Of a DNA stretch of 64,000 bases, positions 3,915 through 52,348 are shown in pieces. The translations under genes were made by a program, and so were the position numbers. The stretch's first letter is position 1; the number at the start of each line of letters is the position of its first letter. The notes under the pieces are model-generated. The model was not told where the DNA came from and did no database searches. It saw only the letters and a list, made by a program, of their open reading frames with translations. The stretch lies in NCBI RefSeq assembly GCF_000143415.4, contig NW_003314344.1:70336-134335 (forward strand). Reading direction: 5' to 3'. The stretch is from Selaginella moellendorffii (Eukaryota > Plantae > Lycopodiophyta).

Positions 3915-5876
3915 TCACTCGAACGAAATTCTACCATCCCAATTCCTGACAGCTGCATGGAAGACCTGCTTGCGTCCTCCAAAGTCTATGAAACATACCA
4001 CCACAGTCTCACTCTTGGTGTCGAAAGTAACTCCAACGAACATCACTCCTCCATTGTCTGGCGTCAGTTCCTCAGCTTGCTTGTCTATGGAGAAATTTAT
4101 CATAAAGACTTGAGCCGAGTGCTGCTTGTTGTAAGTCTTTGCCCTTTCATGGTGGTCTGACAGACTCTTTTTGTCACCATTCACCTGAAATTCAAACCCA
4201 AACTTTGCACCACCATTCGTTACAAGCGTGTCAAGGCACCTCTGAGATTTCCGTCTCTTCGCCCCAAGTTTCTCCCTTACCTCTGGAAGGACGACCAAGT
4301 GACGTTGTGGGTATGCTTGCCGCAACACTGCTTTGAGCCTACACATAAAGGCAAATTGGTAAACATACTCGGATGGCCCATCCGAGTTCTTGCTCTCCAG
4401 CCTTTGCAACGCTTTCATGTCCATTGTCTGGACAACCTGGACGATCAACCACTTGTGATCCAACTTCCTCTGGCTGGGCGGTCCCTGCACCTTGTCACTC
4501 CTGATTTCACACTCCCTCAACATGGCCATCAGCAACAATGGGGAAGAGATCCCCACATAGTAATCACCAGCTGCATTTACCCGCTTCACAGCCAAAACAC
4601 CCTCTGCAAGCAAGTCACGGACTTTATGAAGGTTACAACGCCTTTCCACCTTCTCCAGGAAGCCAAGTAGAAGTTTGTAGCCATCAGGAGTACGAGCACG
4701 GATCTTGAACCTGTCTACAATCCTGCTGTAGGTGTCCTGCTCAAAGACGTAAGTCCCCAGCTCATAAGAATCCACGCGTTCCAACCACTTTACGTAGCTG
4801 AACAACTCCAATCGCAGGACGAACGCCAAGCACGTGCCAACAAGTCCCTTGTGGCCGCAAGTAAGCTCCAGTATTGAGGCTGCAATCTGCTCCACATCTT
4901 GAACCGCACCGTTGTAATCCATGTTCACCTGTTCCAGCAAGTCGACAATGTCGTGCAGCTCAAAGCCCGTCGTCATCACGGAATAATCCTGCGGAAACGG
5001 ACGGGGCCCTTGTCCTGTTGCTGCTGCTTTCTGGAGGGAGCCCTCCAACAAGCTTCTTGCGTCAATCAGGTCCTTCACTGTCTCAACTCCGATCAAGAGG
5101 AACGATCGAAGGTTGAAGCTCTGCTTTAGCTCACGAACCGTTGACAAGAAAGAGTCCAGGCACTCCGAAGATAAGTTGAGGAGTGCATCGGCTTCGTCCA
5201 GAAGTAGGCAAATTGGAGTCGTCAACCTTGCATTGTGGAACAGCGACATGAAAGCCAATGAATCTGAACCGGCAGCGTCCTGGAAGTGCTGAGGACAAGC
5301 CAGCTTCAGGTAGCGAATGAGTGTACTCCACAGGTCTGACGTTGTCCAGTTGATGTTTGCATCTGCTAGTCCACCCAGATAAACTGGCCACACAACGCCT
5401 GCACTCTTGAGCTGCCGCATGATAGCCCGGGCTACAGTCGATTTACCGCTCTGCCTCGGACCCAGCAGCACACAGTACCTCCCTACTTCCAGATCGGCTA
5501 CAATCTTGTCAACGTCAGGCTGCACGAAGTAATGATTTGCAGGAGTCACGGCGTGCCCAACACCAAATACTCTACGATGGGTGTATGATGATAGGGCCTG
5601 GTCGCCATCTCCTGCGAACACGAAGAGTTTGAACTAAAGCTTGCAAAGATTCATTCGCTTACGTGATGTTTCAGCTTTGAAAGCACGAACAATGAAAGCC
5701 TGAAGCGCATAACGTCCTGGGAGGGTGCGTTCCAGGAACGAAGGAATTTCAGCCGCCACCTTCAACGCGTGGACTGTAACAAAACCAGCCCTTGCCATCC
5801 TTGAGAGGTCATCTTCAGTAAACATGGATAACTCCGCTTCCTCGAGCACATGCTGCAGCACGATCCTGACGGCATC
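3915..5876 (-). CDS. Crinkler-type header + NTPase + restriction-endonuclease-fold portion of the gene
   Basis: Walker A GPRQSGKST, Walker B ICLLLDEAD, a sensor-like strand FLLIGV and TCGHKGLV (GxP-equivalent). C-terminal SEYVYQ...LPEV...LDTLV...FGFEF...HHERAKTY resembles an REase motif set. The 51-nt intron 5662-5612 (GTAAGC...TTCGCAG) removes the TAG between two same-frame ORFs. Confidence 0.85.
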
Positions 5877-6469
5877 CTGGTATGGACGATTTTTAGAATT
5901 CGCAAGACAGATATTCACCTACATTGGATGGGAAGAGTTCCGCTGACTCGTATCCGGGCGTAACCTTCAGGCAAATGCTGTCAGTCGGTGTAGGAAAGCC
6001 TTCGCCGTTGAAGACGTGGCCGAGGTGCCGACCACAGGCTGCACATGTTATTTCGATCCTGTGTCCTTCAGCGTCCACCTGAATTGGCTCACAAACATGT
6101 TCAAGCTCAAAATGAGGCCCTGGTATTACCGTTCTGTTAATGGCACCAGGAAGCCCCTCGTAGATGCAATCGGAGTCAGTGGTGGACTTGTATAACGGTG
6201 TTCCGCAGCCAGCACAGTTGTGCACTCCATCCTCATTGTGCTTTCCTGTTCCTGTTCTCCTGCGCAGGACACAGGCAGGAATTGGAGCCGGAAAGAGCTG
6301 AGGGAAAGACTTACTTGATTCGCAGAGTCTGTTCAGGGTTGAGAACTGCCCTCCACTCCTCTTCTCTCCGCTGCTGTCCCAAAGATATGGCCCTACATTG
6401 CAAAGAATGCCGAAGCAAAGCTGGCTGAGCTGCAGGATGCAACACGAAAACAGCGCTTAACGCCGCCAT
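3915..6469 (-). CDS. Predicted 5-exon chimeric gene (~783 aa): leader + MsrB-derived Zn domain + SAM-like header + P-loop NTPase + PD-(D/E)xK-like nuclease (Crinkler/RHS-type)
   Basis: Exons 6469-6315, 6259-6130, 6078-5923, 5876-5663 and 5611-3915. GT-AG introns of 55, 51, 46 and 51 nt. The spliced length is 2352 nt (784 codons) with no internal stop. The intron joining MsrB to the header (5922-5877) is the least certain. Confidence 0.65.
5923..6469 (-). CDS. msrB: Methionine sulfoxide reductase B-derived domain, catalytically defective
   Basis: EEEWRAVLNPEQ, NCAGCGTPLYKSTT, YEGLPGAINRT and IEITCAACGRHLGHVFNGEGFPTPTD are close to plant MsrB. The GWP and RxCxN motifs are absent. Confidence 0.88.
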
Positions 6470-7379: not shown

Positions 7380-9369
7380 TTAAAATAGACATTAAAATGG
7401 ATATAAGCTCCATTAAGAAAGTGACAAAATCACTCCCAAGGTGTAAACAATAGCTATTGCTTCTTTTTCCGCATCCATCCACATAGTTATTCTCAATCTT
7501 CTTGAACGAATGTGAGGCAAGTATGTTGCATGTGGTGGCTTGCTAGGGTCTAAATGCTGGCAAAGGCATACTCCAAAAACCTGTGCTCCAGTCATGATGT
7601 AAATCTCAAAAGGAAGTGTTCACTCTAGTGACTAGAGAACTAGGGCCGTGTGTAGTGACTACTTCAGCAAATCAAAGATTTATTGATGGCTCTCACCGCA
7701 TACAAATGTAATGTTGTGTTGTAGCAGAGCTATCAAAGGCTGTGAATATGTAGCATATTTGTGGAGGAAATGGCAAAAGAAACCCATTTTCTTGATCAAG
7801 CCACAAAGCTGCTTTAAGTTGGTTGGCAGGAGCTAATCCAAAATCTCATAAGCCTTGGCTGTCTAGGGCTTGATCCCATCTTGTGAGACATTAAAGCCTA
7901 GCAACTGGCTTTCAGTCATCCCAAATTTACACTTTGCTAGGTCCAAATAAAACTTGTATTGTCAACAAGTGAAAATTTGTTCCAAGTGCAATGCAAATGG
8001 TGGCTATTGAAAGAGTTAGAGGCCATGCACAAATCATCCATGTACACCCTGAAGGCCTCTCCAATCAAGTCAAGAAAGGCATGAGTCATAAAGTGCTGAA
8101 AAGTAACTCTAGCATTACATAACCCAAATGGTAGAACAAAATACCCTAAGGTGTCCGAAAGGTTATAAGATCTTGATGGTGAGGATGAATGAAGGTCTGG
8201 TTATACCTTGAAAAACTATCCATGAAAGAGTAGTAACGGTGTTTAGCCATCTCATCCACAATCGCATTGATAAATGACATTAGAAGTGATCTTTTATAGT
8301 TGCCTTGTTCAAATCTCAAAAGTCAATATAGAGGTAGAGTTTTCCATTTGCCTTGCTTGTAGGGATGAGGTTGGCCACCCACTTGGATTTCTCCAAAGGG
8401 TAAATAAAGTTGGCTGCAAGAAGTCTTTTAATCTCTGACTTCATTTCCAAATGAGCTGCTAGGCTGAAATGTTGCATCTTTTGACAAATTGGTTTGGCTG
8501 ACTTAGAAAGCGCAATGCTATGCATAATTGTGTTCATAGGGACTCCTGGAAGTTGGCTGTAGTCCCAAGCAAACAAGTCCTTGAAACAGTGAAGGAGATC
8601 CAAGATCTTTGCTGCATTTATTAAAGTAAGTGATGTGGTGATGAAGACTTGATTTTTGTCATCACTGAGGAAAATAGCACAAACCTTGGAGTTTGGAGTA
8701 ACCTTGGGTTTAAAGGGCTCATCTCTCTCAGCCTCGTAAATCTGTCTACCCAAAAGTTTTTGTCATGAGGAACACTTCAAACAGAAATATGAGAGACTTA
8801 TTCTTTATATTAATTGCATGCTGCTATAGCTCTTTTGTTAGGATCCTATCCCTTACATCCTAACCCAACTAGTTAAAGGGGTAATCATTTGATTGTAGGG
8901 CCCTTTCTTTATGCTATTATCCTGATTTAGTGCCTAACAATCCTCCCCTTGTTAAGGAATGATTGTCTGTGATCATACTTAAGCCACCCTTCGGTCATTA
9001 TGGTCTTTCTTTTAGAGTCTACTAAACCTTAGTTCTCCCTCTAAATCCATGTTGAATATTCCTTTAGAATATTCTTGCCCCACTCATCAGTCACGAAAAT
9101 CAAATTAGGCTTTGATACCAATGTTAGGATCCTATCCCTTACACCCTAAGCTAACTAGTTAAAGTGGTGATCACTTGATTGTAGGGCCCTTTCTTTATCC
9201 TATTATCCTGACTTGGTGCCTAACATTTTTTAGGTTCTTTTTGTGGATCTGGTATTCTCCAGTAAGTTAGTGTATGATGAGTTGCACATCTCTAACAAAA
9301 GTGGCTGGCCTAAACTTGAGATCTACTACCAACTTCACAGTGTTGATAGTTGCCAAGTACTCCACTTTA
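7380..9369 (-). mobile_element. Decayed Tat-like Ty3/gypsy pol (aRNase H remnant, RT, RNase H), left arm
   Basis: EKSKWVANLIPTSKANGKLYLYIDF*DLNKA, VYMDD near 8035-8046 and AEKEAIAIVY. Mirror of 33626-35590. Confidence 0.85.
8836..9225 (-). mobile_element. TRIM (terminal-repeat retrotransposon in miniature), 390 bp
   Basis: 104-bp TG...CA repeats at 8836-8939 and 9122-9225. On the minus strand, PBS TGGTATCAAAGCC (9120-9108) and PPT AAGGGGAGGAT (8950-8940). Flanks TCTTT/TTTTT. Confidence 0.9.
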
Positions 9370-12300
9370 AATGATTTACGTGTTTGATCCTTCGTCCCCG
9401 ACGACTCTCTTTTCGTTCTCAACTTTGACTAAACCTCAAGCTTGCGTTCGCACTGCCTTCAGTCCAATCCAAGAAAAGTTTATGAGAGAGCATGGCAACA
9501 ATTACTTGAATCAATAGACTCATCCCTACAGTCTTGGTTGACTCACTTGTAATCATGCCTAGGAAAGATCCATTAGTGCTGTGCTAAATAGCTACGGACC
9601 AGCCTATTTGCCACTCATAGCAAACTCAGGGAAGGTTTGCTTTTACCCACGGTACATGGAACAACTTATAGAACCATTGGAACAACTCATGGAACCAATT
9701 GCGAAGCTTTTTGCACCCAAACGTGTACCCACTCGGATCATCGTTTTCATCTCTGCGTATGCAATGAGACTAATTCCCCAATCTCATTGGATAGTACTCG
9801 CCGAGACTCATCCTCTGATACCAAATGTAGCGCACGTGGTTTTAACCCTTTATCTTATGGTGATTTACCATAGGATAACACCACGAAGCGGAACCTAAAC
9901 CCTCTATGTGCCACGTGACAGATGCCACATGTCCATAGGAACCCGAGGTTCAAAGCCTTGGGCCACTGAACGAAGGAACGGTGCCAAACTCCCAAGCATG
10001 GAGCCAAGGAGTGATGGAACCGAACCACGAAGCAACTCCCGAGCATAAAGCCCAAGGAGCGAAGGAACAGGAGCCTGGAGCGACTTGGAACAGTCCTAGA
10101 GTAACTAGCATCCCAATGCCAGGACCAGCACGCAAAACGAAGCCAAGCGGAGTCTGGCGCTATCTCAGCATACCGGTGGCCTAACGCGAGGACATGGGTA
10201 CTCCACCAGCTAGCATGGAATGGAACTTAGGTTTAGACCCAAGCCGGACGTAGAACAAGGACAGGCATGCAAGTGGGAGCTAGACTATGCCTCAGGTTGG
10301 TCGGCCATGCCCGACTTACCCACTATCCCCATTATACATTTGGAACCCCCCACAGCCCCCCCCGCTTGAGGAACATACGCTTTGGGCTTTCACCCCAAGC
10401 CTCCCTTAGTATCAGGAGTTAGTCTTTAGGACAAGCTCGAAACTTACTAAATATGGAATGTCCCTAGATTGCGAATTTGGACACGGGACGAACACCATTG
10501 TGTTCAGGACGATCTCTACATTCTGTAGATATGCCAAATGAGCAAATTTGGACACTTTCCATAAATAGCATTTGGGACCGAAATGAGACCAACACAAAAG
10601 GTATGATAGCGAGGGTGTTTGGTAGACACGGTAAGCTATCATCTAGTGATATTGAGGGACCAATATCAATATCACGGGGGTTCTTGATATTAACAAGTGC
10701 AAGCCAATGACTCAAGTTTCTCAAACCAGGCCAAGTATGCTCAACAAGAAAAACACATAGGGTTCCTACCTTATGTTTATTCAATCTAAGTTAATGGTCA
10801 TTGACCAGTTTCTCAACTAGCTCAAGTGGGAAACTGATAATAGGTCCAGCAATACCGACCTTCTGCCATCGTGGCAGTAAGGTAAGAGTGTCCATAAGGA
10901 CTAGCCGACAGGTAACTTTCGATACCTGAAGTCACATTCGCGACACTCTCCCCCCCTAGGGAAGATCGACGTCCTCGTCGATGCACACTCGAGTCTAGAA
11001 TACTGCCAAGGAAACAACTCCAGAAAAAGTTCACAGTACTCACACTATGTGAGAAATGCACCAACTTAAATGAGTTAAGAGGCAACCTCTTTGTCTAACG
11101 CAGATGTGCTACCAGCTCAGACACCTTCCGGCCGTCGCCGACAAGGAAATGACTAACGGAGTCAGCCACCCTTGCTGCTTTGGGAGTCACCCAGCTTACA
11201 AAAGTGTGATACACCCCTGCCCGCAGGGACATAGAGAGAGAAGCTAGAGGCCCTAACCCTCATGAGCAAAGAAACCAAACCCGTTAGTAAGGTTTAGATA
11301 GACTACTGTAAATAGGTAGGTAGAGTTGTTTACACGGTCACGCCCTTTTAACGGAATAAGGAACATCAACAGAGAGGTGGGTTATGTGACCAGTCGACAG
11401 TAGCTACCCCATGACTAGAGATTTCAACATGCACACAAAGTGCCAAAGCCAGTCTGCCTATATTAGCCCAAATTCAAAGATCAATAGATGGACAATATCA
11501 AAGTCATAAACAATGATATCTTAGAGTTGTAATTATCAGTGATTATATTTTAGAGTAGAACACAAAAGTATTCTAAGCAAGTTATCATCCGATAAACTAG
11601 TATAATAGTGCAGGAACCACCAAGATCATCATAAGTGGTAAATATAGGAATCACCATCTAACAAAATTCAATAGCAAATATATCATCAAGGAAACCTAAT
11701 GATGAAACTTAACTACCGAAGATTGCAGATAGAATGCCAAACAACTTACCAAAGATAACTCAAAGAACACAAAGTATCATTGACTGGCAAGCAAGATGCC
11801 CGCGAATGTATCACCCAAAGGAAACAACATTCTAATCTATCAAAATTAACTTGAGCAATAATCAACAGAACAGAATGAATGTGGCAAGACCAACAAACAT
11901 TCATTCATGCCAACTATCACACTAGCCAATCCGAATAGATCCCAGCCAACAACACTAAGGAACTCAAGTTGCCTAAACAAGTGTTAGCAACATCTTACAG
12001 ATGTCTCAAACCCAAGAGATCAATCCAGAGGAAACCACAAAGAACATGTGGTATTGCGAAAAGCCAAAAGCCATCAAAGAGAATAACTAACCATCATGAA
12101 AGATCATCAATCATCCCACCAATAAAGAGATGCATAATCATTATTGAAGAAACAATCTACCATCCCGAAGAACGGCAAATCATTCTATACCAACAATAAT
12201 CACAAAACTTTTGATAAGGATAATCAACTACCCTAGATGATAGTCAATTATCACCAATGATTGCTAAACGCAAAAGCCAACTTTATCATTGAAGCTAATA

Positions 12301-20059: not shown

Positions 20060-22749
20060 TGTCGCGAATGTGACTTCGGGTATAGAAAGTTACCTGTCGG
20101 CCAATCCTTACAGACACTCTTACCTTACTGCCACGATGGAAGGTCAGTATTGCTGGACCCTTTATTAGCCCCTCTTGTGCTAGTGGAGTTAACTGGGAAT
20201 TTCGAGTGTACTTAGACCGGACGAGCATAAGGACGGAATTCCTACGTGCTATTAGCTAAGCATATTTAGCCCGGTAAGGAGTTCCAGTCTCGTTATGTCT
20301 TGCACTGGCTAGTGACAAAAACCCTCACGTATTGAGATTAGTCCCTCAATATCGTTGGATGATAGCTTACCGTGTCTGCCAAACACCCTCGCTATCATGC
20401 CCTTTGTGTTAGTCTCATTTCGGTCCCAAATGCTATTTATGGAAAGTGTCCAGACTTGCTCATTTGGCATATCTACGGAATGTAGAGATCCGTCTGAACA
20501 CAATGGTGTTCGTCCCATGTCTAAATTCGCAATCTAAGGACATTCCATATTTAGTAAGTTTTAAGCTTGTCCTAGAGACTAACTCCTAGTACTATGGGAG
20601 GCTTGGGGTGAAAGCCCAAAGCGTGTGTTCCTCAAGGGGGGGGATGTGGGTAGGTCGGGCATGGCCGACTAACCTGAGGCATAGTCTAGCTCCTGCTTGC
20701 ATGCCTGTTCTTGTTCTGCATCCGGCTTGGGTCTAAGCCCAAGTTCCATACCATGTTAGTTGGTGGGGTACCCATATCCTCGTGTTAGGCCACTCGTATG
20801 CCGAAATAGCGCCAAACTCCGTTTGGCTCCGTTTTGTGTGTTGGTCCTGGCATTGGGATGCTGGTTGCTCTAGGATTGTTCCAAGTCGCTCTGGGCTCCT
20901 GTCCCTTCGCTCCTTGGGCTGTATGGTCGGGAGTTGCTCCGTGGTCTGGTTCTGTCACTCCTTGGCTCCATGCTTGGGAGTTTGACACCGTTCCTTTGTT
21001 CAGTGGCCCAAGGCCCTAAACCTTGGGTTCCACACCACTGTTTTATGGACACGTGGCATGTGACACGTGGCATCTACCACATGGCACAAAGAGGTTTAGG
21101 TTTCGCTTCGTGGTGTTATCCTATAGTAAAGCACCATAGAATATAAGGTAAAAACCACGTGCATTACATTTGGTATCAGAGACTATGTCTCAGCGAGTAC
21201 TATCCAATGAGATTGGGCAACTAGTCTCGTTGCATACACAGAGATGAAAACAATGATCCGAGTGGGTACACGTTTGGGTGCAAAGGTTTCGCATTAGTTC
21301 CTTGGTTATAGAGTTTAGTTACCTTTTTATATTGTATGAGCTTGCTCTTGGGCTCATAAGATGGATGTAAGGGATTCAGTTGTACCATTTTGCATGAGTT
21401 TACGCTTGGGCTCATGAGTGTGGCATATTAACAACTCGAGGTTACACTTTGAGTTGGCAGGATAAATGTTGCCTATTGGTGGTTCCATGAGTTATTCAAA
21501 TAGTTCTATGAGTTGTTCCTTGTACCATGGGTAAAAGTAAATCTTCCCTGAGTTTGCAAAGAGTGGCGAATAGGCTGGTCCGTAGTTGTTTAGCATAGCA
21601 CTAGTGGATCCTTCTTAGGCATGATTACAAGTGAATCAACCAAGACTGTAGGGATTAGTCTATTGGTTCAGGTAGTCATTGCCATGCTTTTTCATAAACT
21701 TTTCTTGGATTGGACTGAAGGTATTGCGAATGCAAGCTCGAGGTTTAGTCAAAGATGAGACCGAAAAGAGAGTCATCAGGGACAAAGGATCAAACACGTA
21801 AATCATATTCTCTTTTTGGAGAGATGATTTGCAACGAGGTGTGACTCATTGCTCGTGTTCACAATATGCAATCAAGAGTCCTTACTTTGATGCATGTTGG
21901 AAATGATGGTCTTACAAGTGGTGAGTTATAGGATGGATAGCGGTGGAGCGCTAAACCATTTTGTCTATGCTTGTTATTGGAAGACTTGAGTTACAATGCT
22001 TAATTCTTTTCCAGAAAACCTTGCAATTGCTCCTTGAGTAGCTTGGTGTTGGATTAGTTTTGAGTTTGGTCGAAAAGAGAGTGGCATGAGCTTGTCCGTG
22101 TTGTGAACAAAAGTTAAATGGTGTTAGGTGTTGTAAATCTCTATCGGTGGAGTGTGGCATTTATGTTGCATTTTGTCGAGTGGAGTTGACACTTGATACT
22201 CACATGAACCTTTGAAGTAATAACATGGGTGTTGCTCGTAGTGTTGCTCAATTGATGATCAAGTCATTGTGATTTCCATATCATATCTATGTGACCGTGA
22301 GCAATGTGTTTACGAAGTTGCTTGGTTAAAAGATGATCAACCCTAAAGTGGTTGATGGAGAAACTAATCTACTTGCAAATAATAGCATTGAAGTAGCTTT
22401 GACTAAAGTTCTCAATAGTGATCCATTATGCTAAGCATAAGTTGGTACCTTGGTTTTTGACGAGTTGCCCATAAGGTGTTGGAAAAAAGTTGTAGCATTC
22501 ATTTGCTATAGCTCGTCAGTAAATCCATAGCACTTGGAGTAGATTGTTGGATGGAGAAGGTGTGAGGTTTGAGGCATTGATATTGCTAGCACTTGTGTTA
22601 GTGGAAGTGGCATTGTTATTTCCAATGATGAGGAGTTCTCCTTAGACCTTGATTTTCCATGTCATTTTTTATTTTTTAGTGTTTTGGCTTCACATTGGAT
22701 CTTGAAAGTGATTGAAAAAGAGTGTTAGTGCAATATGGATATCCAAAGA
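20060..22749 (+). mobile_element. Family B 5' LTR (20060-21168), PBS and truncated interior
   Basis: TGTCGCGAAT start, CA end, PBS TGGTATCAGAG at 21171. Interior homologous to 14365-15755. Confidence 0.9.
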
Positions 22750-23580
22750 GAGAAACTTGGGGCGAAGAGACGGAAATCTCAGAGGCGCCTTGACACGCTT
22801 GTAACGAATGGTGGTGCAAAGTTTGGGTTTGAATTTCAGGTGAATGGTGACAAAAAGAGTCTGTCAGACCACCATGAAAGGGCAAAGACTTACAACAAGC
22901 AGCACTCGGCTCAAGTCTTTATGATAAATTTCTCCATAGACAAGCAAGCTGAGGAACTGACGCCAGACAATGGAGGAGTGATGTTCGTTGGAGTTACTTT
23001 CGACACCAAGAGTGAGACTGTGGTGGTATGTTTCATAGACTTTGGAGGACGCAAGCAGGTCTTCCATGCAGCTGTCAGGAATTGGGATGGTAGAATTTCG
23101 TTCGAGTGACAAGTTTCACCATCAAATAGCTGACCTGATTTAACTGTTTGCTGGACGTCAGCTTTTGGGTAACTGCTTCAGGTCTCTGAACTCCGAGTTC
23201 CTATCAACTCCTGTGACAGGGCATGTAACAAAATCCACTTGCATACTTTGTCTACTGCTGGACGATACTAAGTAAAACATTTCAGACTATTCAACATCAG
23301 TCAGTTTCCGTTCCTTGTTTTGTACTTCTATGCATTGTCCATGGGATGGACCTCCAAAATGGAATAAACAACATTGCATCCTCTTATACCTCTTATAACT
23401 ACCATGAGAGACTTGGAAATAATGAAGAAACGATAAACAATATCTCAATGGAAAGAAAAGTTTAGTAACTAATCTGGAAAAAAGAAAGAACTTTAAAAAA
23501 ATAAAACAAGCAATAAAATGTAAAAGCCATATATGCAGCTAATTACATTAGATAATAGGATGTATCACTATAAAGAAAAG
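22750..23580 (+). pseudogene. Duplicated 3' fragment (nuclease C-terminus + 3' flank) of the chimeric gene
   Basis: Near-identical reverse complement of 3444-4274. The ORF start at 22735 comes from TE sequence. Confidence 0.92.
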
Positions 23581-37152: not shown

Positions 37153-40100
37153 CAGCCACTTTTCTACACTAACTCCAGACTTTATCCAACTCAATTGCTT
37201 TAGCCCCAAAAGTTAGCATCCCTTTCGGGTCACATCATACAAACCACCTACTAAAGTCTAAGTTAACCAAAGTCAACTCCAACCCCTTCACTAGTTTGCA
37301 TTGGCTTACGAAAATGGAATGGTTTTCGAACAAAGTAATCAACAAATCAGCCATTGGATAAGTCTAAGAAAATTTGTGGAAAATTTTCCATCCTAGAGAA
37401 AGAATGACTCTCAGTCCAGGAATGCAAACTTCAAGACTCAACCAAATTCCTTATATTAATAAATTCACATAAGTTCACCTCAACACAAATTCTCATGACC
37501 CATAGTATGCTTAAGCCTCAAATATCTTTTTGCAAATACTTCCGACATCCAACTTTGACATCCGCAAAAATGCAAAGTGAACATCCAAGGCTTGATCACG
37601 AAGACCACATCTTCAGATATCCACATTGCACTAACACTCTTCTTCAACCACCTTCAAGATTCAATGTGAATTTAAAACACTAACAATAAAAATGACATGG
37701 AAAATCAAGTTCTAAGGAAAATTCCTCATCACTTGAACAACAATACCACTTCCACTAACACAAGTGCTAGTGATGTTAATGCCTTAACTACACACCTTTT
37801 CCATCCAACAATCTACTCTAAGTGTTAACAGAACAACCAACAAGCCATAGCAAGTGAATGCTACAACCCTATTCCTAACACCCCATAGGCAAACCCTCAA
37901 GGAAACAAGGCACTAACTCAAGCTTAACATAATGGACCACCATTGAAAATTTAGTCAAAGCTATTACAATGCTACTACGTGCAAGTAGATTAGCTTCTCC
38001 ATCAACCACTTTGGGGTTGATCATCGTTTAACCAAGCAACTTTGTAAACACATTGCTCATTATCACATGGATATGATATAAAAATCACAATGACTTGATC
38101 ACCAATTGAGCAACACCCATGTCATTACTTCAAAAATTTATGTGAGTATCAAATATTAACTCGACTTGACAAAATGCAACATAAATGCCACACTCCACTG
38201 ATAGAGATTTAGAACACCTAACACCACTAACTTTTGTTCACAACACGGACAAGCTCATGCCACTCTCTTTCCGACTAAACTCAAAACTAATATAACACCA
38301 AACTACTTAAGGAGCAATAGCAAAGTTCCCCAGAAAAGAATTGAGCATTACAACCCAAGCCTTCTAATACCAAGCCTAAACAAAATGGTTTAGCACTTCA
38401 CTGCTATCCATCTCATAACTCACCATTTATAAGACCACCATAACCAACATGCATCAAGGTAGGGACTCTTGATTGCATAATGTAAACACGAGCAATGAGT
38501 CACACCTCATTGCAAATTATCTCTCCAAGAAGAGAAGATGATTTACGTGTTTGATCCTTCGTCCCCGATGACTCTCTTTTTGGTCTCATATTTGACTACA
38601 CCTCAAGCTTGCTTTCACACTGCCTTTAGTCCAATCCAAGAAAAGTTTATAAGAGAGCATAACAATGAGTATTTGAATCAATAGACTAATCCTCATAGTC
38701 TTGATTGATCCACTTATAATCACGCCTAGGAAGGATCCACTAGTGCCGTGCTAAACAACTACGAACCAGCCTATTTGCCACTCATAGCAAACCCAGGGAG
38801 GTTTGCTTTCACCCATGGTACATGGAACAACTCATGGAACAACTAGAACAACTCATGGAACCACTGATAGGCTAATATTAATCCTGCCAACTCAAAGTGC
38901 AACCTTGAGTTGCTAATGTGCCTCACTCATGAGCCCAAGCACAAACTCATACAAATAGAACAACTCAATCCCTCTTATGAGCCCAAGAGCAAGCTCACAT
39001 CATAAGGTACAACAAGGTAACCAAATCCATACCGAAGGTACCAATGCAAAGCCTTTTGCACCCAAACGTGTACCCACTCGGATCATTGTTTTCATCTCTG
39101 CGTATGCAACAAGACTAGTTGCACAATCTCATTGGATAGTACTCACCGAGACACATTTTTTGATACCAAATGTAGCGCACGTGGTTTTGACCCTTTATCC
39201 TATGGTGATTTACCATAGGATAACACCACAAAGCAGAACCTAAACCCTCTTTGTGCCACGTGACAGATGCCATGTGTCACATGCCACGTGTCCATAGAAA
39301 CCCGAGGTTCAGGGCCTTGGGCCACTAAACAAAGGAACGGTGCCAAACTCCCGAGCATGGAGCCAAGGAATGATGGAACCGAACCACGGAGCAACTCCCG
39401 AGCATAAAGCCTAAGGAGCGAAGGGACAGGAGCCCGGAGTGACTTGGAACAATCCTAGAGTAACCAGCATCCCAATGCCAAGACCAGCATGCAAAACGGA
39501 GCTAAACGGAGTTTGGCACTATTTCAGCATACCAGTGGACTAACGTGAGGACATGGGTACTCCATCAGCTAGCATGGAATAGAACTTGGGCTTAGACCCA
39601 AGCCGGACGCAGAACAAGGACAAGCACACAAGCAAGAGCTAGACTATGCCTTAGGTTGGTCGGCCATGCCTAATCTACCCACTATCCCTATTATACATTT
39701 GGAACCCCCCACAGCCCCCCTCCCTTTGAGGAACACACGCTTTGGGCTTTCACCCTAAGCCTCCCTTAGTATCAGGAGTTAGTCTCTGGGACAAGCTCAA
39801 AACTTACTAAATATGGAATATCCCTAGATTGCGAATTTGGACACGAGACGAACACCATTGTGTTTAGGCCAATCTCTACATTCCATAGATATGCCAAATG
39901 AGCAAATCTGGACACTTTCCATAAATAGCATTTGGGACCGAAATGAGACTAACACAAAGGGCATGATAGCGAGGGTGTTTGGCAGACACGGTAAGCTATC
40001 ATGTAGCGATATTGAGGGATTAGTCTCAATACGCAAGGGTTCTTGTCAAACCAGTGCAAGACAGAGCAAAAGAGAACTAAAAAGCCAGGCCAAATATGTT

Positions 40101-47649: not shown

Positions 47650-50600
47650 ATGGCAAAGGTAGGGCGGAAGCAAACGAATGCGGGGACGGAACCTCCTCCA
47701 GAGCTGGAGCCTCCGGTCGAACAAGAGGCTATGGATGAGGAATCCTTGCATGAGGAGGACTCCAATGAGGAAACTTCTAAATAGGAGTCCGGTGGTGAGG
47801 TTCGGTCGTCCAAGGCTCGATTGGATGTTCTAGAAGGACAATTGGCACAGACCAATGCCCTGCTGGAGACTCTCATGTGCAAGCTAAAGCGTGACAAGAA
47901 GCGGAAGAAAAGGCAAAAGACTGCGGATGTTGGCAGCACAGAAGGTGCAGACCCTTCGGCAGGGATTGAGGCAAAACCAGACAAGGTTGAATAGACCGAA
48001 GTGGAATTAGTCCCACAAGCAGTGCCCAAGTACAAACCAAAGCCCCCACCGGTCTTCAAGGGAGTGAACAACTATAAAGTGGTGGAGGATTGATTTTACG
48101 ATATGGAGGACTACTTCCAAGCGTTGTTGTTACCGAGCTCGGAGAAGGTCCCATGTGCAAAACCATACTTGGCAGATAATGCCAAGTCTTGGTGGAGAAC
48201 GACAGAGGCCAACGAAGGACCGGTGGCCACTTAAGACATGATGAAGGCGAGGATCTGCGCAACATATGTTCCTCCGAATGCCACTCTGCATCTAAGAGAT
48301 GAGCTGAGTAGGCTAAAGTAGACTGGAACCATCCAGGAGTATGTGAATGGGTTCATGGCAAAGAGGATACTTGTCACGGACATGGGGGATATGGATGTGT
48401 TCCATGCCTTCATATCAGGTTTGCAAACCTGGGCTCGCGGTGAGGTGATGCACTGGAACCCGACCAACTACAAGGAAGCATTGGATGCGGCCATCAAGGT
48501 GCATTTCAATGATAACCTGTGAAAGGGGAACGCGACGGGGTTGGGATCCACGTTTAGCAAAGGGGCCAAAGCAAGGGGAACTTATAGCAAAGGGAAATTC
48601 AAGAAGAGTTTCTCTAAGAATGAGTCCTCGGGGTTCCAGAAGGGCAAATCCGGTGGCCAGCGAGCAAGTATGTGAGGGAGTCAAGCAAAAAGAGACAAAC
48701 CCACGGATAAGAAGGTCAAGTTGTTTAGCAGCGTGGGAAATAACGTATGTTACAACTGCAGTGAAGTGGGACACTTTACAAGGGAATGTCCCTACCCAAA
48801 GAAGGCCAGAGCCAATATGGCCATTAAGTCGAGTGAAGTCTAAACTAAGGTATGTGATCCAGTCCCTAGCTCAAAGTTACTCACTACACGAGCAACTTTG
48901 GTAGAGAGTCGTTTGCGACATCTACTAGCCCTCCGAAGGAAGCTCAAGGGTAACTTTGTTAAGATCTTTATTGACACGGGTGCTTTGAATAATTTTGTGG
49001 CTATAGACATAGTCCGGCAAGCCGGACTAACGGTGCAGCGGCTGAGCGAACCAAGGACTATAGAGTTTGTTCAAGGTAGCCGAAGCACTGATGAGGTACT
49101 TCGACAAGCGAGAGTCAAAGTAGGGACTTGGAAAGTAGACATGGACTTCACCGTGTTGGACATGGCAGGATTTGATATGATCTTCAGGATGGATTGATTC
49201 AATCGGTTTGTGGTAGCCCTACATGGACAAGGTAGGAACTTTGTGGTACTAGCGAATGCCCAAGGAAGAAGATCTAGGGTGGAGGCTCAAGATCTAAAGG
49301 TAGGGCAATGCAAGGCTAAAGATTCGTGCCTAAACCTGGTGTCCACGAGAGGACAACTCACTAAAGGGACCAAGGCTGCATTTTTGTGCTTACTCTCGGT
49401 GAGAAGTGATAAAAAGACTGGAACGAAAGAAGTACCTTTAGTGATCTAGCGGGTGTTGGACCAATTCCAGGATACCATGCCAGAGGAGCTACTGGCGGGA
49501 TTGCCCCCCGCACTACCGATAGAACATAAGATTGAGCTGGTCGAGGGTGCTGAGGCGGTGGTTCGTCCCCCCTATCGTTTGAATGAAAAAAAACTTGTGG
49601 AGCTCAAGCGCCAACTAGAGGAGTTGGTGGACAAAAGGTATGTTAGGTTGAGCAAGTCGCCGTATGGGGTGCCGGTGCTATTTGTGAAAAAGAAAGATGG
49701 ATCTATGCGCATGTGTATAGACTATCGGTTGCTCAACAAATATACAAAGAAGAACAAGTACCCTTTGCCAAGGATTGAGGACCTGTTCGATAGGTTGGGA
49801 AAGGCAAAATATTTCTCGAGGATTGACCTAAGGTCAGGATACTACCAGATTAGGGTAGCAGAGGAAGATGTCGAGAAGACAACCTGTCGAACGAGGTATG
49901 GGAGCTTCGAGTTTCTGGTGATGCCCTTCGGGTTATGCAATGCGCCAGCAATGTTTTTGGCGTTGATGAACCATATCTTTGTACTCTATTTGGATCACTT
50001 TGTGGTCGTCTATATTGACGACATCCTGATCTATAGCGAAACACTAGAGGAGCATGCCAAACACTTGACAAAAGTGTTTGAGAAATTAAAGGAACACCAG
50101 CTGTATGCTAAAGAGAGCAAATGTGACTTTGCTCAACAAAAGGTAAAGTTTCTCGAGCATGTGGTGGGCAAGGATGGGCTCAAGGTGGACCTTGAGAAGG
50201 TCCAAGCGATCCAGGATTGGGAGCGACCATCGAATGTACACGAGTTAAGGGCATTCATGGGGCTATGCAACTACTATCGAAAGTTTATCAAACACTATTT
50301 GAGAGTAGTCCTGCCCTTAACGGACCAAATGAGAAAAGGGAAGATGGTATGGACAGCGAAATGCGAGGCGGCATTCGTCCACCTCAAGGGGAAGTTGAGG
50401 AAGGCTCCCGTGTTGGCGTTACCAGACTTTGGTAAGGACTTTGAGGTAGAAACGGACGCTTCAGACTTTGCGTCGGGTGCAATTTTGAAGCAAGACAACC
50501 ATCCAGTAACATTCTTCTCGAAGAAGTTGGACAAGGCTCAACGAAAGTCGCTTGCCCATGAGAAGAAATTGTTTGCAGTGGTCAAGGCACTCAAGGAGTG

Positions 50601-52348
50601 GCGACAGTACCTTGGGAGACACTTCAAGGTTTACACGGACAATGTGGCAACGAAACACTTCTTGTCACAGCCCGACCTGAGGGGAAAACAAGGTCGGTGG
50701 GCCAATGCTTTGGCCGAGTTTGATTGCGAGATTCTGTACAAGCTTGGGAAGAGCAACATTGTGGCAGATGCGCTAAGTCAAAAAGCGAGCTTGAAGTTGG
50801 CGATATCTAGCGCGACAGCAACCTTTTGGGATGATGTGCGGACCACATACGAGAACGATGGTCTAGCACAAGAAGTGTTGCTGAGGAATCTAGAGGCACG
50901 GGAAGCTCACCAAAGAGGTGAGCTGCCAACAGAAGAGAAAACAGGCTATGCATAACGCAACGAACTCATATATTACAAGCAAATAAGGGTGTATGTTCCA
51001 GAAGGGGAACTAAGGAAGGTAGCCTTAGAAGAGTGTCATGACGAACCTCTTGCGGGACATGGCGGAGTGTCCAAGACAATGGGCTTACTCAAAAGGAAGT
51101 ACCACTGGCCAGATATGGCCAAGGATGTCCAAGACTATGTAAAGATATGTCCAACATGTCAGCAGGTCAAAGCCGTGACTAAGGCTAGTGGGGGCTTGTT
51201 ACAAAGCATCCCAATTCCAGATCGTCTGTGGAAATGTCTTACAATGGACTTCATCATGGGACTTCCCCCAAGCGAGGGGTTCGATGCGATATTCATGGTG
51301 GTGGATCGATTTTCGAAGATGGCACATTTCATACCCACCACAACGAAGGTGGATGCGGAAGGTGTGGCGAAACTGTTCTTCGAACAAGTGGTTCGAGTGC
51401 GGGGAAGGCCGAAAGAGATTATCTCAGATCGAGATAAAATCTTCACCAGTAGGTTCTGAAGGACACTCCTAGAACAGTATCGCACCAAGTTGAAATTCAG
51501 CACAGCATATCACCCGCAAATAGGTAATGGGTATTAAGTCAAGATTGATGGCACTAACACTTCTTGACAGACGGACAAACAGAAAGGGTGAATAGGCAGC
51601 TGGAGGATTATTTGCGATGCTATGTCTCGAGAGACCAGACTGATTGGGTAAGTCATTTGGGACTTGCGAAAATGTGTTATAACAACTCACCACATTCGAG
51701 CATCGGGGTGAGTCCATGGGAAGTCATCAATGGGCAAGCTATTGAAGGTCCTATGGAACTCGGCGTGGCCGAGTATCATGGAGAGTTACTCGCAGTGGAG
51801 GCATTCACGGCAGAAAGACTCAACATTTGGAATCTAGTGAGGGATTCTTTGGAACGGGCTCAACAAAGGTAAACTAAGTACGCAAACCAGAAGCACCGGG
51901 ATGTAGAGTTCCAAGCTGGGGAGAAAGTGTGGCTGAACACCAAGAACCTCAGGCTACCAAGTGGGATTAGCCGGAAGTTAACCCAAAGGTAAAAATGCGT
52001 GTATTCCTGTAAATGAATTGATCTTGAGTTCCTTAAGCAAGTTCGTGGGGCCTTACGAGATTGAAGCTCGAATCGGTAAAATGGCTTACCGTCTCCAACT
52101 TCCTCAAGAGATGGGGAAGATGCATCCCATATTCCACGTGAACTTACTCAAGCCATATTTTGAGGATCCGCTTCACAAGGACCAAGTAAGACCTTTACCT
52201 GAGGTCATCCAAGGGGAAGAGGAATATGAAGTCAAGGCCATCCTCAATGCAAGAGCAAGCGACAAGGACACGAGGTGAGAGAGTTCCATGTGAAGTGGAA
52301 AAGATTTCCACACTGTGAAGCGACATGGGAACCTAACGCGCGCCTAAG
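47650..52348 (+). pseudogene. gag-pol polyprotein (gag, zinc knuckle, PR, RT, RH, INT, GPY/F, chromodomain) with point nonsense mutations
   Basis: AKSWW, CYNCSEVGHFTREC, IFIDTGA, YIDD, ETDAS, HDEPLAGH...CPTC, MDFI, FVGPY, EYEVKAIL...VKWKRFPHCEATWE. One frame from 47650 to 51523. Several stops sit at expected W/Q/R codons. Confidence 0.93.

Follow-up and report, generated by a model that had tools for sequence, protein, structure and literature searches.

A probable five-exon chimeric gene of Selaginella moellendorffii that carries an eroding MsrB leader on a Crinkler/RHS-like ATPase-nuclease

Crinkler/RHS-type (CR) proteins, in the summaries that PMC5289972 and PMC6131194 give of Zhang et al. 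(2016), consist of a variable header followed by an NTPase, an HTH and an REase domain, and both alpha-helical and HhH headers are reported among them (PMC5289972). The gene analyzed here is a lineage-specific variant of this known class of modules. Its family comprises many Selaginella paralogues as well as proteins from Adiantum, Paraglomus, Rhizophagus, a chytrid, a dictyostelid and a green alga, a range that agrees with the reported spread of CRN homologues (PMC5289972, PMC12957317). A family profile reaches chytrid (Obelidium), Glomeromycota and dictyostelid proteins at E values of 1e-20 to 1e-115, with no annotated CRN among the named matches. The Crinkler header itself (PF20147, with LxLFLAK and HVLxxP) has no match in this gene or in the Selaginella paralogues, and appears only as sub-threshold matches in one Rhizophagus protein (P0140, E 0.018) and one Paraglomus protein (P0141, E 0.0098). 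A literature search for Crinkler in Selaginella found no relevant report.

The gene lies in a 64,000-nt stretch of DNA (the window, to which all coordinates refer) that derives from S. moellendorffii scaffold GL377648.1. Its parts, in the order of transcription, are as follows.

6469-6314, minus strand: exon 1, with the ATG at 6469 and an in-frame TAA two codons 5' of it; the product is a basic, acid-poor leader (about 35 aa) and the first MsrB-derived residues, EEEWRAVLNPEQ
6313-6259, minus strand: intron 1, 55 nt, GT..AG, phase 2, at a position in common with SmMSRB5
6258-6128, minus strand: exon 2, MsrB remnant with the first CxxC (NCAGCG); GCGWPA lost by an 18-nt in-frame deletion
6127-6077, minus strand: intron 2, 51 nt, GT..AG, at a position in common with SmMSRB5
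6076-5923, minus strand: exon 3, MsrB remnant with the second CxxC (TCAACG) and HLGHVF; ERHCVN not intact; the exon ends in a new tail, VTPGYESAELFPSN
5922-5877, minus strand: intron 3, 46 nt, GT..AG, the fusion junction, with a TAA at 5893 inside it
5876-5663, minus strand: exon 4, alpha-helical header, 71 aa
5662-5612, minus strand: intron 4, 51 nt, GT..AG, placed from the sequence and from a paralogue's spliced reads
5611-4470, minus strand: first part of exon 5, AAA+ ATPase of the ORC/Cdc6/STAND type with helical lid and winged helix
5462-5436, minus strand: Walker A, GPRQSGKST
5207-5187, minus strand: Walker B, LLLDEAD
4469-3915, minus strand: last part of exon 5, PD-(D/E)xK (restriction-endonuclease fold) domain with residues E633, E662, D679 (4232-4230), E692-x-Q694, H705, R708 and Y712; stop at 3917-3915

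The spliced coding sequence is 2352 nt long, that is, 783 codons and the terminal stop, and has no internal stop. A preliminary description of this DNA had proposed a single frame running through four short GT-AG introns, and this is what we find (55, 51, 46 and 51 nt). The in-frame join of listed open reading frames is likewise real, and it takes in four of them rather than three; exon 4 has its first in-frame ATG at 5825, one nucleotide away from the 5826 given before. The same description took this for the only intact gene in a background of transposable-element debris, a picture to which three further features have to be added.

33626-37152, plus strand: copy B, an inverted duplicate of 9367-5815 (98.3% identity overall, 100% over 6700-5815)
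22746-23580, plus strand: fragment C, 835 nt, 99.8% identical to 4278-3444
49453-51459: a long pair of open reading frames for a Ty3-type RT/RNase H/integrase

Copy B runs through the MsrB exons and introns 1-3 into exon 4, of which it retains the first 62 nt before a repeat family cuts in, and it corresponds to the annotated partial protein SELMODRAFT_18637 (98 aa). Fragment C, made up of the final 364 coding nt and the 3' flank, adjoins the same repeat family. A search within 12 kb of the gene gave neither terminal inverted repeats nor long direct ones.

A second full copy lies about 65 kb away on the same scaffold and is annotated in GenBank as a single hypothetical protein of 766 aa, SELMODRAFT_447043 (P0001). 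It has the same order of leader, MsrB remnant, helical header, AAA+ ATPase and nuclease; the 568-aa open reading frame is 88% identical at the amino acid level, exon 4 is 96% identical at the nucleotide level, and intron 4 has the same position and 96% identity. Ordinary genes surround the paralogue, whereas repeats surround the copy in the window. We considered P0001 as an orthologue from another species and rejected this, the window being 100% identical to P0001's own GenBank scaffold. The architecture had been thought undescribed; the fused model was in fact already in GenBank under SELMODRAFT_447043, although its MsrB origin seems to have been named by nobody before. The preliminary description had suggested looking for paralogues with and without the MsrB part, and ones that carry a related helical header without it are present too (P0007, P0009).

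Splicing of introns 1-3 is documented by a 463-nt contig from RNA run X1, which matches the gene with zero mismatches, covers exon 1 from 6461 to 6314, and joins 6314 to 6258, 6128 to 6076 and 5923 to 5876. The last of these is the very junction that had been predicted and recommended for an RNA check. Just 29-30 nt of the contig fall on the exon 4 side of it, as would be expected of a 31-mer graph at a point where the path merges with transcripts that share exon 4. The contig is not assignable to the full copy because copy B is identical across the whole spliced stretch. The sole exon 5 contig of this copy, also from X1 (4410-4704), lacks one A at 4576, a deletion that, if real, would end the protein at residue 578, ahead of the nuclease. 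The spliced 5' contig and the exon 5 contig have depths of 11 and 10.

Two deep stranded RNA-seq runs (X23 and X24), sampled at about 12%, gave reads of which nearly all that could be placed belong to the paralogue, so that the copy in the window appears silent or weak in those runs. At 40 of 40 fixed read variants the bases are the paralogue's, and for that reason we rejected an assignment of these reads to the present copy. SELMODRAFT_447043 is thus expressed; its reads are spliced at the site homologous to intron 4 and run in frame through the former intron 3. A loose read end at 5611 equals the 18 nt that close exon 4 in the paralogue, and no read across the exon 4-exon 5 joint of the window copy was found in the RNA data. 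First mates map to the plus strand only, as expected for minus-strand RNA in most stranded libraries.

The first three exons derive from MsrB. Pfam SelR matches the 110-aa open reading frame at 6225-5893 (E 3.8e-10; 40.2 bits, cut-off 24.9), and MsrB proteins of the PDB match this part with E values down to 2.7e-9. Plant MSRB (SmMSRB5, P0026/P0023; Pfam SelR PF01641) has intron positions in common with exons 1-3, and the likeness extends through EEEWRAVLN, CGTPLYKST, GLPGAINRTVDA and CAACGxHLGHVFxGEGFPTPT. In contrast to plant MSRB, the fusion lacks GCGWPA, an intact RHCVN and the EYN, KF and GTE segments, and its normal C-terminus is replaced by the splice into the header exon. Against canonical SmMSRB we count at least 14 in-frame deletions and zero frameshifts. 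The GCGWPA substrate-binding segment and an intact RHCVN catalytic motif (R-x-C-x-N) are absent from both copies, ERHCVN in the present copy being either deleted or cut down to a single Cys that lacks its Arg and His; judged by these losses, the remnant is catalytically dead. The sequence of this copy keeps both CxxC pairs (CAGC, CAAC), predicted to hold the structural zinc. An msrB paralogue had been proposed as the donor, and the common intron positions and similar leader bear this out, pointing to a DNA-level copy of an MSRB5-like gene. That the donor also supplied its promoter is not supported: similarity of the two copies begins about 10 nt before the ATG, and the DNA upstream gave no alignment to the paralogue or to MSRB5.

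Comparison of the two copies separates frame from fold. In the paralogue the MsrB part is much more eroded: the first CxxC is broken (YASC), GLPG and IEIT are deleted, and a Pfam scan found no SelR match. A 16-nt deletion there turned intron 3 into an in-frame coding insert of 30 nt (10 codons). Exon lengths differ between the copies by -30, -36 and -36 nt through about ten gaps, all multiples of 3, as against intron gaps of 1, 5, 1, 1 and 16 nt. For dN/dS we obtain 0.52 over the MsrB exons and 0.32 over exon 4; exon 5 (564 codons) has a ratio of 0.43 and three indels, each again a multiple of 3. Near 4577 the paralogue carries three additional bases. The reading frame of the MsrB part has thus been conserved while its fold has not, which argues against a conserved sensor. 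A ratio of about 0.5, together with the two CxxC pairs of the present copy, leaves room for some constraint on the remnant.

Downstream of the fusion junction, the modules that the preliminary description had called as an NTPase and an REase-fold domain were called correctly. The helical header that precedes them gives no Pfam match and no feature match in the Atlas; it may be helix-hairpin-helix-like, with structural matches to HhH domains that are weak (TM 0.54-0.58 over about 70 residues). AAA_22 of Pfam matches the 568-aa open reading frame at 32.4 bits (cut-off 27), and the model of the ATPase region (pLDDT 82) is an ORC/Cdc6/CED-4-like AAA+ domain with helical lid and winged helix, for which the best Foldseek matches are ORC1, Cdc6, archaeal ATPases, CED-4 and NRC4 (E 8e-9 to 1e-6). 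The Walker A and Walker B motifs are intact.

The C-terminal 184 aa are modeled with high confidence (pLDDT 92) as an alpha-beta-beta-beta-alpha-beta core (H34-52, E59-65, E78-85, E88-96, H100-117, E120-128), with D679 on strand 2 and E692-F-Q694 on strand 3. The model matches BamHI (Z 8.3), OkrAI, BstYI, BglII, Can2, NucC and McrC, and restriction-type nucleases make up nearly all of its top structural matches. Taken alone, Z values of 7-8 would be modest; the weight comes from the near uniformity of the match list. By sequence, a profile search of the PDB with this domain found nothing, Pfam gave no significant match to the DUF8371/PDDEXK_3 families, and across 42 nuclease-domain sequences of the family Pfam returned scattered single weak matches to PDDEXK_3, CoiA_nuc, DpnII-MboI and PDDEXK_4. 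E633, E662, D679 and E692 are kept in 35-39 of the 42 family members. The paralogue has N at the metal-binding position of D679, and nuclease activity may therefore not be what selection keeps.

We can present a proposal for the origin of this gene that, taken whole, we regard as reasonably probable. An MSRB5-like gene would have been copied at the DNA level (leader and three exons) and joined, through a new intron of 46 nt, to a Crinkler/RHS-like family member that already carried an alpha-helical header on the family plan of header, AAA+ ATPase, winged helix and PD-(D/E)xK nuclease. The fusion would be older than the local duplication that left two full copies about 65 kb apart. Translation would begin at the MsrB ATG, and selection would therefore have kept the frame open while the catalytic motifs and parts of the fold were lost. 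The role left to the MsrB remnant would be that of a leader or spacer at the N-terminus, perhaps of a targeting presequence, rather than that of an enzyme or a conserved zinc-bound sensor, and the C-terminal module would be the working part. By analogy with other ATPase-coupled restriction-type nucleases, we infer an ATP-gated switch controlling a DNA endonuclease in the plant's own cells, perhaps for genome conflict or defence.

The preliminary description had instead read the MsrB part as a zinc-bound fold donated as a sensor or targeting module. As an integrated sensor or decoy, this domain would detect oxidative stress, or methionine sulfoxide, or else a pathogen factor aimed at MsrB, and would gate the ATPase-nuclease. 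The retention of both CxxC pairs and the HLGHVF core in the present copy, its remaining SelR score, the dN/dS below 1 over the alignable MsrB codons and the free swapping of N-terminal modules in the family all speak for such a sensor; however, the clearly expressed sister copy has lost a zinc cysteine (the first, C to Y), the GLPG and IEIT core segments and the SelR match, and both copies lack the substrate-binding and catalytic motifs. Moreover, residues 1-200 of P0001, searched against the proteins of 421-1340 aa in a set of 5.8 billion, retrieved only P0001 itself, so that the MsrB-bearing N-terminus has no wider conservation in that size range. We consider the sensor improbable.

The leader invites a different thought, namely that a captured MsrB presequence sends the ATPase-nuclease to plastids or mitochondria and that the MsrB body is an eroding spacer, which would account for a frame kept despite the decay of the fold. 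Its first 35 residues, with 4 Arg/Lys, 1 acidic residue and 13 Ala/Leu, are similar to the extension found in the long isoform of SmMSRB5, and neither copy has lost the LQCRA...GQQRRE stretch. Against this, the leader has several indels between the two copies, a DNA target in the nucleus would fit the helical header and the winged helix just as well, and the functionally characterised CRN effectors are all nuclear in planta (PMC6131194); we think organelle targeting unlikely, if slightly less so than the sensor. A similarly low probability attaches to the locus being a young pseudogene or null allele in a repeat-rich cluster, with the contig derived from copy B and only the paralogue functional. 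The identity of copy B over the spliced region, the frameshift at 4576 in the X1 exon 5 contig, the lack of clear reads of this copy in the roughly 12% sample of X23 and X24, and the ongoing breakage that fragments B and C display beside one repeat family would all fit such decay. Yet the reference keeps 783 open codons with every ATPase and nuclease motif, including the D679 that the paralogue is missing; exon 5 shows the constraint and in-frame indels given above, and X1 holds both spliced 5' and exon 5 contigs of this copy type. We continue to favor an eroding MsrB leader on an ATPase-nuclease.

In that account, a conflict-type ATPase-nuclease took its start codon, its leader and three exons from a housekeeping enzyme gene. 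This would be a clean and datable case, in an early-diverging vascular plant, of exon capture giving rise to a gene. The two copies show selection keeping the reading frame while dropping the enzyme fold, and such erosion is rarely so clear. The gene also adds a plant example to the free swapping of N-terminal parts by Crinkler-like ATPase-nuclease modules in non-pathogens, and header swapping of this kind bears on the role of these modules in free-living eukaryotes. The sensor reading, if true, would make it a lycophyte receptor for immunity or conflict that is of the 'integrated decoy' kind but not an NLR. It is doubtful, though, that the remnant is a bait or redox sensor gating an AAA+-controlled nuclease, or that the leader sends a Crinkler-type nuclease into an organelle. 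The fusion seems limited to one locus pair in one species, and alone it opens no long-standing question.

Among known systems, the plant NLRs, whose captured decoy domains had been drawn on as a parallel, offer an analogy only: Pfam found no NB-ARC or LRR match in this gene, and its ATPase resembles ORC/Cdc6 as closely as CED-4 or NRC. The CR proteins, as summarized in PMC5289972 and PMC6131194, have the same order of P-loop NTPase, helix-turn-helix and restriction-endonuclease fold and the same patchy spread (Glomeromycota, chytrids, amoebozoans, green algae and land plants), whereas our gene lacks the ubiquitin-like LxLFLAK header and bears no sign of secretion or delivery into another organism. 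The nearest protein-language-feature clusters (score 0.98) are bacterial AAA_35/AAA-ATPase_like proteins of about 520 aa with a C-terminal PD-(D/E)xK domain (DUF8371, PDDEXK_3); these have the same size and two-module layout, and AAA_35 also matches eukaryotic family members, but they have neither the eukaryotic headers nor the introns. Finally, McrBC likewise places a PD-(D/E)xK nuclease under an AAA+ motor or switch, and among the Foldseek matches to the nuclease domain McrC ranks first (E 7e-4). This likeness is one of fold and logic only, since McrBC consists of two polypeptides with a GTP-specific McrB, whereas here a single chain unites the nuclease with an ORC/Cdc6-like ATPase.

The window matches S. 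moellendorffii scaffold GL377648.1 (GCA_000143415.2) at 100% identity, with record coordinates equal to window coordinates plus 70335. On its minus strand, in an island of GC 0.51 amid repeats (about 0.35-0.45 in the adjacent 2-kb bins), four listed ORFs (6469-6311, 6225-5893, 5918-5634 and 5621-3915) unite through GT..AG introns of 55, 51, 46 and 51 nt into a spliced CDS of 2352 nt, or 783 codons plus stop; introns are short throughout this genome. The exons of this gene, called copy A here, are:

6469-6314, minus strand, exon 1
6258-6128, minus strand, exon 2
6076-5923, minus strand, exon 3
5876-5663, minus strand, exon 4
5611-3915, minus strand, exon 5

The preliminary description was correct in joining an MsrB piece in frame to an ATPase-nuclease, as both the spliced 783-codon frame and junctions in RNA indicate. 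It also took the rest of the 64 kb to be transposon debris, which is too sweeping, because long open frames are present:

49453-51459, plus strand, Ty3-type pol ORF pair with reverse transcriptase, RNase H, and integrase zinc finger and core

A pair of 51-nt C-rich direct repeats (5-55 and 10346-10396; 76% identity, 10.3 kb apart) flanks the gene region and possibly represents pieces of some repeat element.

The best database match of the gene's 568-aa ORF is SELMODRAFT_447043 (766 aa, 88% identity), whose annotated model has its parts in the identical order and which lies about 65 kb away on the same scaffold, with ordinary genes around it. Similarity between copy A (3915-6469) and this sister locus (L001:10001-12454) runs from about 10 nt before the ATG to the stop codon, and the flanks fall to random-level identity (43-44%) although the introns are conserved.

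Nucleotide identity between copy A and the sister gene
MsrB exons 1-3: 74-86%
Introns 1 and 2: 86-88%
Exon 4: 96%
Intron 4: 96%
Exon 5: 93.5%

Synonymous divergence is likewise a mosaic, with dS of 0.37 in the MsrB exons and 0.12 in exon 5, where it is itself uneven (0.03-0.11 over the first half and about 0.2 over the second), a pattern suggestive of subsequent gene conversion in the 3' part.

The differences between the two copies bear directly on what the MsrB remnant does. Exon lengths differ by -30, -36 and -36 nt, and the roughly ten exonic gaps (3, 27 as three adjacent gaps summed, 6, 21, 3, 12, 12, 9, 6 and 9 nt) are all multiples of three, for which we estimate a chance of about (1/3)^10 under neutral indel lengths; intron gaps are 1, 5, 1, 1 and 16 nt. 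The 16-nt deletion turned the 46-nt intron 3 of the paralogue into 30 coding bases, in frame and stop-free (AYWFKNRPHQ), which are present in its transcripts. The dN/dS ratio is 0.52 for the 104 MsrB codons that can be aligned, while exons 4 and 5 give 0.32 and 0.43, respectively. Relative to canonical S. moellendorffii MsrB proteins, GCGWPA, EYN, KF and the ERHCVN region are gone from both copies, GTE is lost in copy A only, and the sister protein alone has lost KHNEDGV, GLPG, IEIT and others; its first zinc cysteine is a tyrosine, and it no longer has a SelR match in Pfam. Gaps confined to whole codons, beside lost fold elements, argue that translation through the remnant matters and that, judging from these sequences, the MsrB fold does not, at least not in both copies. 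A frame kept while the fold is lost argues against a conserved zinc-bound sensor or decoy, which had been proposed and is left unsupported.

Transcripts place the fusion in RNA. A 463-nt contig from run X1 matches the window with zero mismatches and omits exactly 6313-6259, 6127-6077 and 5922-5877, so that the 5923/5876 junction singled out for checking does exist. Its exon-4 side is just 29-30 nt long, as we would expect of a 31-mer assembly graph where the path joins other transcripts sharing exon 4. The contig fits copy A and a truncated duplicate, copy B, equally:

33626-37152, plus strand, copy B, inverted 3.5-kb duplicate of 9367-5815 by sequence comparison, 98.3% identity

Copy B, annotated as the partial protein SELMODRAFT_18637 (98 aa), is 100% identical to 6700-5815, a stretch that takes in the MsrB exons with introns 1-3 and 62 nt at the start of exon 4, after which it breaks off into a repeat. 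Reads of the stranded RNA-seq runs X23 and X24 align to copy A at 95-99% identity, with first mates all on the plus strand, and derive from the sister gene, as 40/40 fixed differences equal the base in its locus. Their unaligned ends show that in the sister gene intron 4 is spliced at the homologous site and the former intron 3 is read through. No reads joining exons 4 and 5 of copy A were found. X1 also contains a single exon-5 contig of copy-A type (4410-4704; depth 10, against 11 for the 5' contig), which is one A short in the AAA run at 4576-4578; if real, this deletion would shift the frame and end the protein at residue 578, ahead of the nuclease. This AAA stretch is also the site of a 3-nt indel between copy A and the paralogue.

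Fragments of the gene recur elsewhere in the window, together with a repeat family:

22746-23580, plus strand, fragment C, 835-nt duplicate of the last 364 coding bases and 3' flank, 99.8% identity
13914-15627, 20641-22743, 26903-28652, 37156-38700 and 9371-9697, both orientations, repeat family members, 85-95% identity

At least five members of this family occur in the window, and each breakpoint of the duplicated pieces has one: the family adjoins fragment C, cuts off copy B and borders the duplicated segment at 9367/9371.

Exons 1-3 have the same intron positions as SmMSRB5, which places the capture at the DNA level, and the leader, basic and acid-poor, is similar to the N-terminal extension that the long SmMSRB5 isoform carries. 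Upstream of copy A the DNA is alignable neither to MSRB5 nor to the paralogue, which leaves the idea of a donated msrB promoter without support. The helical header encoded by exon 4, with weak structural likeness to helix-hairpin-helix domains and nothing else, also occurs in paralogues P0007 and P0009 without any MsrB, and was therefore already part of the ATPase-nuclease gene when the fusion arose.

The reading of the module as an NTPase with an REase-fold nuclease is borne out by motifs, predicted folds and structural matches. The model of the 568-aa ORF (pLDDT 82) resembles, to about residue 380, ORC1, Cdc6, archaeal ATPases, CED-4, NRC resistosome subunits and TnsC. Both Walker motifs, A (GPRQSGKST) and B (LLLDEAD), are intact, and a helical lid and a winged helix come after them. 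The C-terminal 184 residues, modelled with 42 relatives (pLDDT 92), form an alpha-beta-beta-beta-alpha-beta core, for which Foldseek placed McrC, Bax1, BsaXI and Hjc at the top of its list and an exhaustive aligner ranked BamHI first (Z 8.3 over 131 residues, rmsd 4.0), with restriction-type nucleases making up nearly all of the matches after it. E633, E662, D679 and E692 are conserved in 35-39 of the 42 relatives. In copy A the residue that follows E692-x is Gln, and BglII has Gln at the equivalent position after Glu-x. At D679, the conserved metal-binding Asp (window codon 4232-4230), the expressed sister copy has Asn (HLNMLV vs CLDTLV), as does P0013, and P0004 has His.

Taken together, the likeliest reading is a young, lineage-specific fusion produced by exon capture, whose MsrB piece would serve as start and leader, eroding in frame, and is attached to a predicted ATP-gated DNA nuclease of a conflict-type family. 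A search with residues 1-200 of the sister protein, among proteins of 421-1340 aa in a 5.8-billion set, recovered the same N-terminus from the sister gene only. The architecture, presented earlier as undescribed, is already in GenBank as the fused sister model; its MsrB origin seems to have gone unremarked.

A profile search gathered 445 clusters with E values of at most 1e-10. Named members of the family are many Selaginella paralogues, others of which have N-termini of different kinds, and proteins from Adiantum, Paraglomus, Rhizophagus, the chytrid Obelidium, the dictyostelid Tieghemostelium and the green alga Enallax. The annotation of one paralogue, SELMODRAFT_427665 (988 aa), gives it the N-terminus of a DEAD-box helicase, a fusion that may reflect either the merging of gene models or a further swap of header. 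Ranked by features, the closest clusters consist of bacterial AAA_35 proteins that have PD-(D/E)xK tails, and two Glomeromycota members gave sub-threshold matches to Crinkler headers. The Selaginella gene lacks the ubiquitin-like header that defines Crinkler proteins, and membership in that family is unproven. The module is classed here as Crinkler/RHS-like in architecture. The commonest Crinkler C-terminus is an NTPase with HTH and REase, alpha-helical and HhH headers are mentioned for these proteins, and CRN homologues are known from algae, land plants and amoebozoans (reviewed in PMC5289972, PMC6131194, PMC12957317).
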